64,000 bases of DNA from Blepharisma stoltei ATCC 30299 (taxonomy: Eukaryota; Protista; Ciliophora). Position 1 is the stretch's first letter, and each line of letters starts with the position of its first letter. Made by a program: the position numbers and the translations under genes. Below the pieces are notes generated by a model. That model searched no databases, was not told the DNA's origin, and worked only from the letters and a program-made list of their open reading frames with translations. Shown one piece after another: positions 7,160-28,101 of the stretch. The DNA is taken from the NCBI GenBank assembly GCA_965603825.1, contig CBFDEM010000057.1, positions 1 through 64,000 on the forward strand. The letters run 5' to 3'.

Positions 7160-8253
7160 TCTTAATAGTGCTAAAGTTTGTTTTTATCTCCCATATCTTG
7201 GTGAGTTTCTGAGCTGATTCAGCTGCTTAGTGCTAATATCAAATCTAAAAAATGGGACTCTATCCTTATATTCTGAATACCCATTAAAATAGATCGATTC
7301 TTTATCAGCTATTCAAAAAACTTGATAATAGACTGATAGAAAAGATTTTCCAATAATTCTTCAATTGTACCGCTCTCAATAATATTCCCTTCAAATTCTA
7401 TCGCATAAGCTCTCAGTTCAGCTACAAACATTATTAGCTTATAGTGGTTGCAAGCTAGACCTTCTATCTCTGAATAGCTATCCAGATCAATATTATATTG
7501 ATATATTTTGTCCTTTTTGTCTCCTGCAATTAGAATTGAGTGCCTATAAAAGACGCACAAGCATTCATCTACATCAGCTGGGGGAGCAGCCAATGCCTTT
7601 CATCGACTTTTTGTTAAACTTAGCTTCTTAGCTACCGAATTTTGGCTTCTATTAATCTTAGAGAGACCAAAAACATAAACTTTTGCTCAAAATAAGCGAC
7701 CCAAAAGCCAAAGAAATCATCTCCAAATGGGAAGGGGAAGAACTTGCAATCTCATATCTTGTAAAGTTAATTATTCCAGCTACACCCTCAATTAGAATAT
7801 GTTTTCGGTCCCACAAAAAATAATTCTTTATTTGAAATCCGTATTGCATTTTATCACATTTGCTTTCTATAAGCAGGGAGATTGGTTGCGAACTAAAATT
7901 GATAAGAAACTCTTTAACTGGCCTTTGCAGAAGGGCCAACTGAAAATTGGTTTGCAACTTAGGCGCACAAGCTAACCCCCAATTAGCTAATTTCCCCTCT
8001 CATAATAATTATATGCAGTGAGATGCTATAAAAAACTTGTTGAATCATCTAAATTGACTGACAATGAGTTTACATCATATATTTCCTTTTTCGTGCTGAT
8101 GTTATAAACTTGGAAATAAGTGGGTAATTCTTTATTCTGATAAAATTCATTCAATCTATCGTAAGTAGTAACTCTTTCTTTATATTGGGTAATTTTGCAT
8201 AGATTCTCATAAGAATTTTCGCTGAATTTAAGTGCTCTTTGTGGAATTGTCAT
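7160..8253 (-). pseudogene. Kelch-like paralog of 6259-7074, disrupted by an IES-like insert and frameshifts
   Basis: Colinear similarity (FQVYN, ELFFVG, IYQYNIDLDSYSEI, GNIIESG); 187-bp insert and a frameshift near 7785. Confidence 0.85.
7842..8030. mobile_element. TA-bounded IES-like insertion (187 bp plus one TA) with imperfect terminal inverted repeats
   Basis: Ends are TATTGCATTT and (reverse complement) TATAGCATCT. Excision leaving one TA gives DDSTSFLRISNKELFFVGPK, matching the paralog DNLTRFIQISNNELFFVGSK. Confidence 0.8.
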
Positions 8254-18714: not shown

Positions 18715-19169
18715 GATCAAATGGATTGTTTATACTTTGATATAACTTATTAAGGAAATTTATTATTTTAATTTATTAAAATAATTTTTAAGTAGAGTAT
18801 TTTCTTTAGTTTTAGAAAATAATATTAAATTATTAATTTAATGTGGTTTATCTAAGAGTGATTTGTGGTTAGAATTTATCCAAAGTAATTATTTTATTTA
18901 TAATTTACATATAATAAATAATTAATAAATTTCGTAGTCATATTTATAAGAAAATATGATTTATAATTCATATCTAATATAAAAAAAATTGAAGATCATG
19001 AATAGGCAAGTGTAAGCTGAACTTACCTCTTTATAATTTCTCCTCCCGGAGTTCATCAAAAAATAAATCCCTCGCTCTCAATGTTTATATTTTTCCATCA
19101 TTAGATCCTAGAGCACAAAGCACACCATTTAATTACATAAACCTATATTATAATATATCATTCATAAAA

Positions 19170-20200
19170 ATAGCTATGCACTGAAAAAATTCAATTTATT
19201 GCTTTATTATAATTGGTGAACTTATTAGCCTGCTAACTCTCATTGGGAATAGAGAAATTAATGGCCTCATATGCATTTTTGACTCAAAAACCAGACTAAA
19301 TAAGGATTGTTGCCACTAGCTTCAAAGACCAGCTGGAAGCTTCGCCTTAAATTTGAGCTAAATAACTAAAAATTGCAGCTAAACCTGATCAATTTGTTAA
19401 TTCAATTTATATGCATTATTCTCCTAATAGAGAATTTCTATAGTTTTATGATAACTGCTCAGTGATGAATATAAACTAACTTCAAGTCAACATTGGCTAA
19501 AGTCCTTCAGGACGCAGATTTAGTGAGCCCATAAACACCCTAAATGTTCAAATATCCATCTTTAGATAAAAATTTGCAAAAACTATAACTCTTAAGGTCA
19601 GGAAATACTGAGAGTGCATCTCCTGAAATTTCTTCTTTTGCATAGTCTGGTGGCTAACACATAGAGTAAGCGGCACCATATTTTGATAATAATTATGGAG
19701 AAAAGGGCATAGTATTTCAAATGAAATATGAATTGACCAAAGATAAACATGCATATTTGGCTCCGCTTTTATCTAGAAATCTTTATGCTTCAATTATATT
19801 TGCTTCAAAGATGAAATGCTGATGGGAACCTCAGAAGATGGCCTATGTTTGTATGATTTCTACACAAATAGCTATTCTAAAATTGCAGTATTTGATAATA
19901 TAAAGCGGCATTTTCTCATCTCAGGAAAAACAAATGCTTATATTATGGCATCTCAAAGTGATATTTATGAAAGCGGGTTCAAGAACCCTCATATTTGGAG
20001 TAGGATCGCTATCTCAGTTTGAAATCAAAATAGCAATTTTTTCGTGGACATATCACAATAATTTTATATTCATAAGAGAAATAACATATGACGAACACGA
20101 TAAAGCAACAAAGGCAGATTGCGTTTATGTTGAATTCAATTTGATAGATAAGACTTCTAATGTAAAAATGACTGCCGAATGAAAGTGCCAAACATTTTAA
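19170..20200 (+). pseudogene. Kelch-like paralog with two IES-like inserts, 5'-truncated
   Basis: Colinear with 20497-21607; inserts 19197-19407 and 19417-19678; frameshifts; ends KCQTF-stop. Confidence 0.85.
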
Positions 20201-20496
20201 ATAAATAAATTATTTTTATTATAATCAAAATCATGAATTATACTTATAATGTTAAAATATGAAAATTGGCAAAAAAGCTGAAGGGTGAAATAGAAATTTA
20301 CAAAGAAAATAATAGACTACAATTTTTCAAATTAATAGGATTAAAATTGCATATAAGTTGAAAAATAGCTATGGCAATTCAAAGCAGGCTAGTATTGTGC
20401 AAAAGTAAGAAATATGTTAAATTAGCAATATTGAAATAATAAACCTTTATCAGATCTCATGGCAAATCATTGGATAAGAAATATCAATTATAAATA

Positions 20497-21607
20497 ATGA
20501 AACTAAAAGTAAAAGAGACTGAACACCAGCATAGCCGAAATTTATACAGTTTAGCAGGAGAGCCTGGCAGATCTTATATGAAACTTCTTAAATTAGATGC
20601 TAAAACTAGAAAAGAAGAATGAGAATTGATCAGATTACCTTATAGACGTCAATGAAGTTTTTTGATAATTCAGCTGCCAAATAATGAGGTGCTTATTTTG
20701 GGACTTGAGTCAATGACGACTTATTTTGGATTCATCATTAATAGCTTGACAATGAAAATAAGAAAAGACATAAATCTATATAAAATTGAAAAAATAACAG
20801 GAATCACACTTTGAAAGAATTCAATTTATTGCTTATATTATAATTGGTGAGCTTATTAGACTACTGCAGCATAACTCTGCCCTCATTGAGAATAGAGATC
20901 GTGTCCGTAGGGATTTCTGGCTTAAAAGGGCAGCCCAAATAAGCATTGTCGCCACTATCTTCCTAGACTATTTTGGCACCGCCCCTTAAATATTGGGCTA
21001 AATAACTAAAACTGCCGCTAAACCGAAGAAGAAGCTTTAATTTGTGTTTAATTCAATTTATATGCATGTTAATTATGGATTCGATGATCTCTTATGAGTT
21101 CTATGAAAATATGATATGGCAAGAGATAAATATGCAAATTTAGCTCCGTTTTCATTTAAAGATCTATATTGCTTTAATTGTATTTGCTTCGAAGACGAAA
21201 TGCTGATGGGAACCTCAAAAGGTTACCTATATTTGTATGATTTCTACACAAATAGCTATTCTAAAATTGCAGTATTTGATAGCACTAAAATTGGAACATT
21301 TAATGATATAATAAAATATATACTTCTGTCAGGAAGAACAAATGCTTACCGCATAGAATCGAAGGGAGATATTTATGAGAGTGGGTTTAAGAACCCTTAT
21401 ATTTGGTATAAGGTGAGAAGATCGGAGTTTCCAGAATGATTTTTTGGCTCATCGTGAACATATTACAATAATTTTATATTCATAAGAGAGAGCTCTTTAA
21501 GCGAATTCGATAATATAAAGGCAGAAAGCATTTACTTTGAATTCAATTTGGAAGATAAGACGCTTAAAAGAAAAAAGGTTGCTAAAAGAAAGTGTCAAAT
21601 CTTTTAA
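20497..21607 (+). pseudogene. Kelch-like CaaX protein gene interrupted by a single 232-bp insert
   Basis: Open frame 20497-20829, resuming at 21062 to TAA 21607 (RKKVAKRKCQIF); the only lesion seen is the insert flanked by AATTCAATTTAT direct repeats. Confidence 0.85.
20818..21061. mobile_element. IES-like insertion with 12-bp terminal direct repeat AATTCAATTTAT
   Basis: Repeat at 20818-20829 and 21050-21061; excision gives WKNSIYMHVNYG, versus paralog WDNSIYMFYNDYG. Confidence 0.75.
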
Positions 21608-22189
21608 AAAAAATACTCTTTAATATAATCAAAATCACGAAATTATATTTATAATGCTAGACGTATGAATAAATAAATAATTAATTAAAGTCTATCGCTT
21701 ATTTATTAGGACCAACGAACTTCCTTATATTTGTCATTTATATTTCCAACTTCAGTTACCGTATGCTTCAACACACATCTTCTATTCGTCATTTGCAAGT
21801 CTATTCACTCAAATTAGCAGATAAAAGAATTCAAACAATTCTTTCAATAATCAATAATATTCACCTTGCCCAATAAGCACCTTTCGTTCGCATTCTCATA
21901 ATTACGCATCCTTTTTATATGATCTTTTTCTTCCAATCGCCATTTTTACTCTTTTTGCTGCTAAAAGATATGCGCTTTTTACCTCCCCGCCAATTCTGAC
22001 TTTGACTCTGCTGCATTTTCCTATCTCTTGTCTGTCTTCATCCCTTTTTGCCGCGCAGCACTGCTCTATTCTCCTTCATCAAACCCACAAGGAACTTCAA
22101 TTGTCACTCATTTATAACTTATTCTATGCACGTATTGAAGCATGCCGTCCCTCTAAACAAGTCTCATCTCATCCTGCTTAAGGAGAACT

Positions 22190-22600
22190 ATCACGATTTT
22201 TGAAAATTATTATCGTGGCTCTGGAATTGTGTCTTGAAATGATTCAATCTGTATTTTTCTGGGGCATATTATTCCTCATCTTCAATTCTATTAAAATACG
22301 ATATAGAGAGAAATAGATTAATTAAACTTAGTTGCATAAACTTTGCAAGTGATTCTTATAGTTGCATTTAATTTAGAAGGCAAGGATATTTATGCATATG
22401 ATTTGCACATAAATAGCTATTCGGTTCTTCCGCTTATTATTTCTGAAGTTCGAAAAGTGCTATTTTCAATAAGCTCAAGGGATGATATTATTGAATTTTA
22501 TGGATATTTTTATGAAAGCGAGATTAAGAATTCTTAATCTTGAAATCTAATTAGAGTATCAATATTTCAGATAAAATAATTGTACCAAAAATCATATCAT
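22190..22600 (+). pseudogene. Kelch-like remnant
   Basis: IYAYDLHINSYSVLP..FYESEIKNS. Confidence 0.65.
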
Positions 22601-22609
22601 AGATATACT

Positions 22610-23534
22610 GTAATGATTGCATTTTTTTATCTCCTCCTCAATTCATAGAGAAATTATTATATAGATTGCTTTGTTTTGAAAATTCTTGGTAACTAAGTTA
22701 AACATCCAATAATTTTTCTTCGGCATTATTTTATCACCATCTGCTGACCAGCCAACACCTCTTATAAATATAAAATTGCTATTGTACACTCATGCCCACC
22801 GCTTGGAATTGCACATGTTTTGTGATTTTATATTTCCGATCTTATTCCAAGTATAAGGGTTCTTGAATCCACTTTCATAAATATTGCGAGAGCCTACTTC
22901 TATGAAATAAACATTTGTTTTTCCTGAAATCAAAATGCAATTTCCTCTTCTGCTAAAAGGTATGTCGATTAATGAATAACTATTTGAGTAGAAATCATAT
23001 AAAAAGACTGGTACAGGCAAATGCTAAAATTAATTTTTCTTCGAAGCAAACATTATGACAGAACATATCATCAACAGGAATTGGAAAATTAGCTAAGAAA
23101 ATGTTTTTACCTGTAGATAAATCATATCTTGATAGAATTGGACAGTTTTTGAGTCCATAATCGTTATAAAACATATAAATTGAATTATCCCAATAAACAG
23201 CACCAATCACTTGCTCATAGTCTGGAAAATCATATCTATTATTATATAAGTTTCAAATTTTTCGCGTTTTTGATGTTAAGCAATTAAGAATATAAGCAAC
23301 AGAATCGTCTTGATCGTTAAAAATTAGCAATTCATCTTTTGGCAGCCTAAGAATAATATGATGATGAAGTTCAAAATGTCTGGGAAAAGCAACACCCTTT
23401 ATTTCTTCAACCATTGTTTCTACATCTAATTTATGAACTTTCGATCAGTTGTTATCTTTATCGCCTGATAGATTGTATAAATATTTGCTATGATCGGGCG
23501 TCTCTTCTAGTACTTTTGTCTTAAGTTTTATCAT
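22610..23534 (-). pseudogene. Kelch-like gene with a frameshift near 23020
   Basis: Open from ATG 23534 to about 23020, then continues in another frame (FLYDFYSNSYS, IYESGFKNPYTW). Confidence 0.8.
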
Positions 23535-25099
23535 ATTTATTACTATTGATATAAATAAAGTTTTTAATATAAACAAGCAATAAGCTTACCTAATTTATTT
23601 CTGTTGTGCCTTCAATAAATAGATTAAATATTTGTATTAATTTTCTATATTTATGCTATTTATTGTATTTCTTGTGCTTTCTTTTTATTAATGCTATATT
23701 TTATGATAATTCTTCTATTGTTGTGTATCAATATATGTATTTTTATTGTATCATAAGATTGTTGGTTGGAATTTCGCTTATTTTTTCCCTTTATTATTTG
23801 TCTCTTTCGTCCTCAAGCATTCCTCATAACCAAAAGCTCAAATCTGAAAATGTGAAAATTTAACTTAAAAAAGCTATAAGAATGGCGCCAATTTTAACTT
23901 GAAATAGATGCTATAGAGAAGAATAAGGATCTAAATAAGAATATTTTATGTTAGATTAACATTCCTACTCTTATTGCTAATTCAGAGTGATTTATGAGAT
24001 AAATTTTTAATTCCAAAATATTAGTGAAAAGTTGTTTATGATCTTTTCGAGCATTTTTTTACTTCATAATCAATTAGAAGCTGGTCTTATAAAACAATAT
24101 TTAGGTATAAAAAGAATTCTATGCGATATTATAATCTATATTGGCTATTGCTATGGTTAGGACTAACTATAAGTATAGTCAGATTTTTTTAATATATATT
24201 TAAAAGCTTTGAGGGTAATCTTTATTCTCCTTTGCAAATTCACCGTAATCTAAATTTAAAAACTCTGAAACATAGGCTTCTCTTCTTTTTCAGTAAATAA
24301 GCGTTTTGTAAATACTATTAGAGCATTGGCTAGACTTTTTGTTCAAAATTTTGAATCTTAGCTAATGATTCCTCTTTAATAGCTTCCCTTAATAAAGTAT
24401 GTATTTAAAGTTCCTATATTAGCAACATTTCTAAAAGGCATTTATAAAACCCAATTGGATGCATACTTAAAACTTGGCAGCGCTCTAAAATTTTTGTTTT
24501 CGATTTCTTTTGTTGCTTGATATCATTTAAAATCAGATCTTTTCTGTTAATTAAAATTATTCAAGCTGCTTTTATCAGATTGTTTTAGTATCATCATGCT
24601 TATAAGATATTCATTTTTCATGTGAAAAAGCTGTGATTGAAATGTCTTTATTCCTTTTTCTATTTTATATTTTCTAAAGTTGAATGGCTAAATAATTGTT
24701 TCACGCTTCGAATAAGTTTAAACTTATTTCAAGAACTTTTTCGTTTGGAAAGGAGTAGAATTATAACCTTCCAGTTTTTGATTTTCAAAAAAATCGTTAA
24801 ATTTCTGTTATAAAATAAATATGTTTATAAATAAGATACGAAAAATCAAAAGATTAATTAATAAGATAATTGCACAAGAGTTTCAATTTTAAATTATTTC
24901 TCTTATTTTTAAAAGCAAGTTCTAATTAATGCCTGCAATCTCGAAATTTTAAAAAATAGAGAAAAAAATTTATATTCTTTCATCTTATTAAAACACCAAA
25001 TAGTCTATATAAATAGTTTATTAACAATAAAATATCATGTCTAATTTTTTTTCAAAAAAATTTCTGTTTTTGAAATTTTTAAAGCCCCACGAATAAGCA

Positions 25100-27241: not shown

Positions 27242-27840
27242 TTAGTGAGTTTATAAACACCCTAAATATTCCAGTATCCATCTTTAGATAAAAATTCGCA
27301 AAAAATATAATCCCTAAGGTCAGGGCTACTGAGAGTGCATCTCCTGAAATTTCTTCTTTTGCATAGTCTGGTGGTTAACACATAGAGTAAGCGGCGCTAT
27401 ATTTTGATTATAATTATGGAGAAAAGGACATAGGATTTCTAATGAAGAATGATTTGGCCAAAGATAAGTATGCATATTTGGCTCCACTTTGATAGAAATC
27501 TTTACTGCTTCAATTATATTTGCTTGAAGACTCCTATTTATTTGAAAAATTGTCGCTACTATTTTTTTTTGTTAATTTCTAGTCCACCCTCCAGCTTTTT
27601 CGCCAATTTTCATATTTTAATATTATAAATATAATTTATTTATTCAAATATTTGGCACTTTCTTTCAGCAATCATTTTTACTTTAGAAGGCTTATCTATC
27701 AAATTGAATTCAGCATAAATACAAGCTGCCTTGACCTCATCATTATCGTCATATGTACTTTCTCTTATGAATATAAAATTATTGTGATATGTCCAGGACA
27801 AAAGTTCTATTTTGATTGGAAACTGAGCTTGCAACCCCAC
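27242..27840. pseudogene. Rearranged copy of the 19.5-20.34 kb kelch-like locus (direct part plus inverted part)
   Basis: 27242-27530 matches 19520-19810 in direct orientation; 27532-27830 matches 20015-20340 inverted. Confidence 0.85.
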
Positions 27841-28101
27841 CTTATTCCAAATATAATTTTTTTCTTAATTTATCGATATCTAAATTATAAAAGGCTGCTT
27901 AAAAAGGTTTTGCAATTTGACTTTAAAGATTAACACTCAATTAAGGGAATGTATTATGTTGTCTTTTGGCTGGAAATTACGCAGTTTCTTTTATAGGGAG
28001 CACTGTTCCAGTTAATTAGATTTTAAGATTCAGCATTTTAATGGCTTTTATCTATTTAAAGCTAGCCTCTGTTTATACTCTATAATTATTGAAAATTATT
28101 A

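Follow-up and report, generated by a model that had tools for sequence, protein, structure and literature searches.

A 232-bp insert, probably an old IES, retained in a Kelch-like gene of the Blepharisma stoltei reference somatic genome

Why should a gene of a ciliate somatic genome remain split by a segment whose exact removal would make it whole again, and does this segment work as a switch of the gene? The question is raised by positions 20,497 to 21,607 of the window, by which we mean the whole stretch of 64,000 nucleotides of B. stoltei ATCC 30299 DNA analysed here. The window is a somatic (MAC) contig, the first ~1.9 kb of which is filled by CCCTAACA telomere repeats, and its genes are open only if TGA is taken as Trp. 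The published MAC assembly of this strain comprises 41 Mb and 64 telomere-capped contigs, with UGA coding for Trp and introns mostly of 15-16 nt (PMC9942806). Since the window is somatic MAC DNA, the finding concerns DNA which is expected to be already free of germline IESs. About 40,000 IESs are described in B. stoltei, three quarters of them with TA-containing direct repeats, with a median length of 255 bp, a 70% intragenic location and precise excision; their residual retention in MAC-enriched DNA is 0.02 or less, and excision is regarded as a continuum, the elements described including some that are partly excised in the soma as well as 'cryptic' IESs of low frequency (PMC9942856). A preliminary description of the stretch had proposed that the segment is excised facultatively and holds the gene on or off.

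The features of the locus, each with the evidence on which it was delimited, are the following.

20497..20829, + strand: 5' coding segment of the Kelch-like gene, 111 codons (MKLKVKETEH…LWKNSIY), left repeat copy included (frame, family alignment)
20818..20829, + strand: left terminal direct repeat AATTCAATTTAT, with one TA at 20827-20828 (sequence)
20830..21049, + strand: body of the probable retained IES, 220 bp (X6 and X8 contig depth, composition)
21050..21061, + strand: right terminal direct repeat AATTCAATTTAT, with TA at 21059-60 (X8 junction contig)
21062..21607, + strand: 3' coding segment, 181 codons (MHVNYG…KRKCQIF) plus TAA (P0001, frame)
21593..21604, + strand: C-terminal CaaX-like box, Cys-Gln-Ile-Phe (sequence, endings of close relatives)
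19188..19410, + strand: insert homologous to that of the target and bounded by the same 12-bp repeats, in a 5'-truncated, decayed tandem paralog (sequence alignment)
20591..20609, + strand: candidate conventional germline IES site with a 19-nt junction overlap (X6 contig tails absent from the MAC assembly)
21396..21410, + strand: second candidate germline IES site with a 15-nt junction overlap (X6 contig tails absent from the MAC assembly)

The split gene, its insert and its family

The insert lies between two perfect copies of the 12-bp direct repeat AATTCAATTTAT, at 20818-20829 and 21050-21061, which are 232 bp apart from start to start and have 220 bp between them. In the insert-bearing sequence, the first frame terminates 10 codons into the insert (…NSIYCLYYNWWAY followed by the stop) and the 3' part is in another frame. 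The reference-strain MAC carries the gene as two ORFs, a truncated N-terminal one of 120 aa and a C-terminal one of 181 aa, and only the latter was found on record in the protein collection (P0001, 100% identity), where it starts at the ATG adjoining the right repeat. Joining of 20497-20829 to 21062-21607, with TGA as Trp, gives a 292-codon ORF with no stops and no frameshifts, which ends in KRKCQIF before TAA. Hence the sequence confirmed the earlier claim that the insert between perfect 12-bp direct repeats is the only lesion and that its removal leaves a 292-codon open frame. This joined model was used in local scripts only (frame check, alignment and simulation), whereas the searches used the separate pieces.

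In an alignment with eight intact family members, the joined product runs across the junction with no gap, and an insert-free paralog on the minus strand has a single copy of the 12-mer (…WDNSIYMFYNDYG…). Repeat-to-repeat deletion therefore restores the ancestral uninterrupted sequence. At least 56 relatives of the gene are present in the genome. The description of the gene as 'Kelch-like' is supported indirectly, through its distant relatives: two TGA-free proteins matched by a piece of the target (L015 and L022, E ~1e-6) pass the Kelch_1, Kelch_4 and Kelch_6 models, whereas the target pieces themselves have no match above Pfam thresholds. Through these relatives the gene is linked to the Kelch-repeat beta-propeller proteins (Pfam Kelch_1 and clan); it differs from them by the lack of a Pfam match of its own pieces and by a CaaX-like box, which is restricted to the close subfamily. 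The insert interrupts …NSIY|MxxxYG…, which aligned with …vYvfGG… of the Kelch-passing relatives. Its position is in blade region two or three of this Kelch-like gene with a CaaX-like end. The C-terminus of the target, CQIF before TAA, agrees with the pattern of a CaaX box (a Cys fourth from the end, then two residues that are mostly aliphatic, then X), and the close relatives end in CDLF, CNLF, CVIF and CQTF. Such C-x-x-F endings of the close subfamily suggest geranylgeranylation as the predicted modification.

The term 'subtelomeric family' was found to fit the neighbourhood, in which the 28 kb next to the telomere contain eight complete or fragmentary family copies, but not the family as a whole, which is spread over many contigs. 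A word search with the 110-aa TGA-free piece of the target matched only two proteins encoded in the window, and the exact-protein look-up among the contigs of other runs gave no matches. The neighbouring insert-free paralog (22547-23585, minus strand) is read in two overlapping frames with a switch near 22980-23023, which may be a frameshift or a 16-nt intron, and its C-terminus is devoid of the CaaX-like box.

The GC content of the insert is 40%, against 30% for the coding parts. Its body contains no inverted terminal repeat and no significant ORF, and it could not be linked to any repeat family of the germline. Only two homologous copies of it, the target one and that of the tandem paralog, are present in the 41-Mb MAC genome; the lack of inverted ends and this low copy number in the MAC speak against a MITE or a cut-and-paste transposon. 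BogoMITE was rejected as well, as the insert has neither a TAA/TTA repeat nor C-rich inverted ends, and so was the 228-bp IES size class, which spans 225-231 bp and is largely palindromic, whereas the 232-bp insert is non-palindromic and lies just outside this range. A structured RNA or a tRNA-derived element was also considered; the insert and the paralog region gave no Rfam matches (E up to 1) and no tRNAs in ARAGORN, and folding of both strands was no better than that of shuffles (z -0.26 and +1.25).

Exact repeats of at least 12 bp at a spacing of 50-500 bp occur 36 times in the window, and ~14 of these are not of low complexity. The 12-bp repeat alone is not rare, so the significance of the insert rests on the restored, family-consistent frame and on the DNA evidence from run X8 given below. 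Collapsing of other 12-bp repeat pairs as IES bounds (7821/8125 or 3374/3737) rebuilt no ORF. The hexamer TATTGC, earlier taken as an end motif, was not enriched in the window (64 occurrences, 57.7 expected) and has to be given up as such. Elsewhere in the window, close to the 7821/8125 pair, an IES-like insert at 7842-8030 begins with TATTGC after TA and has three GCTAA/TTAGC motifs (P = 0.01 in comparison to shuffles).

DNA forms in two strains

Four public runs were compared over 18900-22100 as assembled contigs, which show the presence of a form and not its absence, since rare variants drop out. Run X6, an independent sample, has no differences from the window, and its insert lies on a 482-nt contig (20780-21261) at a depth of 104, in comparison to 81-93 for the flanks. 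No insert-free junction contig was found among the X6 contigs over 18900-22100. Moreover, 99% of the words of 19900-22100 are present in X1-X4. Taken with the full depth in X6, this makes the insert a real and near-complete feature of the reference strain DNA, in which essentially all somatic copies are shown to keep it.

Run X8 carries the same species label and comes from the same study as the assembly, and it is ~4% diverged from the window (~2% in coding and 3-6% in non-coding parts). Going by the data listing of PMC9942806, it is probably the Illumina run of strain HT-IV. Its 3.9-kb contig 13 ends at 20829, and in its junction contig GGAATTACACTTTGAAAG stands directly before 21050; this equals 20800-20817 with one SNP, and one repeat copy is kept. 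The 12-bp repeat is shorter than the 31-mers of the assembler (k=31), so that the junction words must exist in the reads and the junction is no artefact. The insert-bearing contig of X8 has 283 nt (20800-21079) at a depth of 7.9, with 8 substitutions and 3 gap letters relative to the window; by this divergence it is X8's own copy and not contamination from the reference strain. The depth of X8 is 7.9-10 in the insert bins and 50-62 in both flanks. The exact insert-free form makes up ~85% and the insert-bearing form ~14% of the DNA, and the coexistence of both forms in X8 is thereby shown. The earlier claim that the segment is excisable at the DNA level is borne out, the exact repeat-to-repeat junction being the major DNA form of X8, whereas that of facultative on/off control is not, because in X6, a separate sample of the reference strain, the insert stands at full depth and a junction contig is absent, and the difference lies between strains. 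No X8 contigs lie on 18900-19434, and upstream of 20001 the sequence of the 3.9-kb contig departs from that of the window; in this strain the truncated tandem paralog may have been rearranged or may be missing.

Two further places in the gene were found at which X6 contigs depart from the MAC sequence. The contigs leave the window at 20609 and re-enter at 20591, and again leave at 21410 and re-enter at 21396; contig 11 (X6, depth 93.5; record 11) has 271 letters outside the window sequence before 21396. None of the four 30-nt tails (20591/20609 and 21396/21410) has a counterpart in the 41-Mb MAC assembly when up to 3 mismatches are allowed, whereas a positive-control tail, that at 20013, finds its place in the MAC paralog (27828-27857). 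The outgoing tails of the two sites resemble each other (GAKAAATAAAATGG…, 14/16 first letters), and so do the incoming ones (…CCTTAWTAA..GTTWAA). Two related germline-limited insertions with direct-repeat overlaps of 19 and 15 nt, which are unusually long, were probably removed correctly from this MAC, and the 232-bp unit would be the only one of three insertions kept in the reference MAC. The tails at 20591-20609 and 21396-21410 are missing from X8, and for this reason the contigs point to partial somatic retention as a more likely source of the 14% form than micronuclear DNA.

Age of the insert and selection on the frame

The tandem paralog at 18.98-20.2 kb carries the same 12-mer at 19188 and 19399, flanking a homologous insert of 199 bp. 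The identity of the two inserts is 72% over 1-195, or 74% with about eight indel events, and their ends are better conserved (28/30 matches in the first 30 columns, 66% overall). As the insert is common to the target and the tandem paralog, the insertion is older than the duplication. The paralog itself has lost its 5' coding part and has gained a frameshift and a second insert (19425-19700). This second insert lies ~20 nt after the right repeat of the first one, and a 90% copy of it is found 8 kb away (27242-27421), adjoining another family fragment. The X6 depth at 19425-19700 and 27242-27421 is 2-4 times that of the flanks, and RNA-like X9 and X10 contigs, one of them an exact match, lie on 19531-19725.

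Over 77 aligned codons, the target and the tandem paralog differ by a dN of 0.19 and a dS of 0.61; the resulting dN/dS of ~0.3 is not near 1, the value which had been set beforehand as speaking against the proposal. In a neutral simulation with substitutions alone, 0.7% of the frames of this composition had acquired no TAA or TAG when 10% of positions were substituted, and 0.2% when 13% were, and the alignment of the inserts predicts many indels for neutral DNA of that age. Moreover, the window and X8 differ by no indels in 879 coding bases and by 10 events in 989 flanking bases (Poisson P ~1e-4). All gap letters of the X8 contigs fall outside the gene, 7/7 of contig 13 upstream of 20497 and 6/6 of contig 16 downstream of 21607, with none in contig 15. 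These comparisons support selection on the ORF while the germline copy carried the insert, and an ORF kept functional in spite of a germline insert requires routine removal of the insert. Two statements of the preliminary description stand on these data: that the insert is old, from the homologous and diverged insert of the paralog at a dS of about 0.6, and that the ORF is still under selection, from the dN/dS of ~0.3, the 0.2% survival in simulation and the 0 coding against 10 flanking indels.

Origin and retention of the insert

The best explanation is that the 232-bp unit is probably a weakly excised old IES, fully retained in the reference-strain MAC. The unit (220 bp plus one 12-bp TA-containing repeat copy) would be an old germline IES of Blepharisma, and its precise cutting during development of the new macronucleus, presumably by a PiggyBac-type excisase, would rebuild the 292-codon gene. 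It would be a weak IES, with a retention of ~0.14 in the X8 strain and ~1.0 in the reference strain. Retention would then be a failure, either maternally inherited or cis-genetic; a gene which belongs to a set of at least 56 relatives, and lies in a neighbourhood of decaying copies, could plausibly tolerate it. Maternal protection by an insert-containing MAC, as in Paramecium (PMC6182129), changes in cis, the insert copies of the two strains differing at 8 or more positions, or a missing factor may be the responsible cause.

As expected of an IES, the unit has a TA-containing terminal direct repeat, one copy of which is left after a precise, frame-restoring removal. IESs of the Blepharisma type are removed while the macronucleus develops, by the domesticated PiggyBac excisase and with 24-nt small RNAs. 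With regard to presence in the germline and absence from the soma, the unseparated nuclei of X8 give the insert a depth of 7.9 against 50-62, whereas the somatic DNA of the reference strain retains it. The unit shares with the IESs of B. stoltei (Seah et al. 2023, PMC9942856) its intragenic location, the TA-containing repeat, a length of 232 bp within the main distribution and the precise frame-restoring removal. It differs from them in standing at full depth in the published somatic assembly, and so outside the IES catalogue, and in its repeat of 12 bp in place of the usual 2-4 bp. A repeat so much longer than the usual TA/TAT/TAA is atypical for the species and may count against the IES reading.

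Close parallels are found in Paramecium. In its strain- or clone-specific retention (the mtA promoter and mtG-dependent IESs, PMC6182129; PMC6771405, PMC8670300), a segment is likewise excised in some lines and kept in others, retention inside a CDS inactivates the gene, and larger IESs (~200 bp) are more variable. In our case, however, two wild isolates ~4% apart in sequence are compared, which leaves a cis-genetic cause equally open, and the Blepharisma lineage diverged early from Paramecium. The ohnologous and paralogous IESs of Paramecium (Arnaiz et al. 2012, PMC3464196) similarly keep an identical position through duplication, with a diverged interior and better-conserved ends, whereas here the paralog with the second copy is truncated and dead, and neither copy has been removed from the somatic genome. 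The left end TATTG (20827-20832) and the motif GCTAA at 20997-21001 and 21017-21021, which are conserved in the insert of the paralog, resemble the TATTR ends and internal GCTAA of the mtG-dependent IESs (PMC6182129). This resemblance was treated as chance, as 2 motifs stand against 0.5 expected (P = 0.09) and exons have as many.

An unlikely alternative is a germline indel polymorphism, in which an old insertion other than an IES, with a 12-bp target duplication, would be present in both nuclei, the X8 lineage would have lost it by recombination or slippage between the 12-bp repeats and the two X8 forms would be alleles with skewed somatic representation. Strain HT-IV is heterozygous (4.7e-3, PMC9942806), so the two forms could be alleles; further, a 12-bp repeat lends itself well to precise deletion by microhomology, and a duplication of 12 bp is atypical of the species' IESs (PMC9942856). 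Simple heterozygosity, however, does not predict a ratio of 14:86. An ORF kept open and constrained over a dS of about 0.6 with the insert in place needs routine removal rather than one recent loss, and the two further junction pairs into non-MAC DNA show that the gene is demonstrably edited.

The programmed facultative switch, a counterpart of the mtA promoter excision of Paramecium in which regulated or epigenetic retention and excision would turn a family member on or off, is improbable on the present data. It is consistent with the occurrence of both states in nature, ~100% retained in one strain and ~85% excised in the other, with the intact ORF of the retaining strain, with the complementary mating types of the two strains (PMC9942806) and with the maternal inheritance of retention established in Paramecium (PMC6182129). 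The variation, however, is seen between strains, and none among the stages, conditions or cells of one strain; the gene has a family of at least 56 paralogs and a neighbourhood full of decayed copies; and no junction transcript is present among the X9 and X10 contigs. Runs X9 and X10 are RNA runs only by guess. Within the gene, their exact-match contigs lie on 20510-20784 only, at a depth of 3-4x, and none of these low-depth assembled contigs is on the insert or across the junction. A 374-nt contig of X9 has 93% identity to 21162-21522 and no counterpart of >=90% in the reference MAC genome. The mRNA time course of B. stoltei mixes both strains (PMC9942856), and this contig is probably an expressed relative from the partner strain of that mixed time course.

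Removal of the insert from RNA as an unusually long or non-canonical intron, with the insert-free DNA of X8 as an intron-loss allele, is highly improbable. The 13 equivalent repeat-to-repeat cuts have ends such as AA..TT, AT..TA, TT..AA and TA..TT, and none is GT-AG, GC-AG or AT-AC. Six other GT/GC..AG pairs, of 268-415 nt, do restore an open frame in an ORF that is conserved, but none yields the NSIY|MHVNYG family product and each deletes family-conserved residues, 9 or more of them. A spliceosomal intron was hence rejected for the lack of canonical ends and for a length of 232 nt (268-415 for the alternatives) in a species with introns mostly of 15-16 nt (PMC9942806); the region is not spanned by any RNA contig, and the earlier view that splicing is unlikely is upheld by the 13 non-canonical cuts and the conserved residues which the alternatives would remove. 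Barely credible is a gene killed long ago by the insertion, whose open frame after conceptual removal would be due to chance: the neighbouring copies are decayed and the expression signal is minimal (a depth of about 4, confined to the 5' part), but the neutral open-frame probability is 0.002 or less (substitutions alone), the CDS has 0 indels against 10 in the flanks between strains, and dN/dS is about 0.3.

A strain-dependent retained IES, which the unit probably is, represents a known kind of genome-editing variation, and a gene switch is not demonstrated. On its own the locus merely adds to the retained IESs, in a gene that can be spared, and it would mean that gene models of the reference somatic assembly are split by IESs left unexcised, as here, where only the 181-aa 3' ORF is recorded. 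It adds the coexistence of both forms in a second strain with its own diverged insert copy, and two non-MAC junction pairs in one gene. It is chiefly useful as a crossing marker: the strains are inter-fertile and of complementary mating type, retention is ~100% in one and ~14% in the other, and the germline sequence is in both, with strain-specific SNPs in the flanks, that at 20805 among them. We consider it rather doubtful, but worth stating, that retention is passed on through the cytoplasm by maternal MAC protection, or that a trans-acting factor for the few IESs with long repeats is missing in one strain. If this were true, such control of DNA elimination would already be present in the earliest-branching ciliate lineage studied, and through such variants, dispensable genes of a family could be kept on or off in the soma in a heritable way. 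The logic of maternal 'genome scanning' is known from Paramecium and Tetrahymena. The marker would bear on the maternal inheritance of IES retention in heterotrichs, and hence on the ancestry of genome scanning in ciliates.
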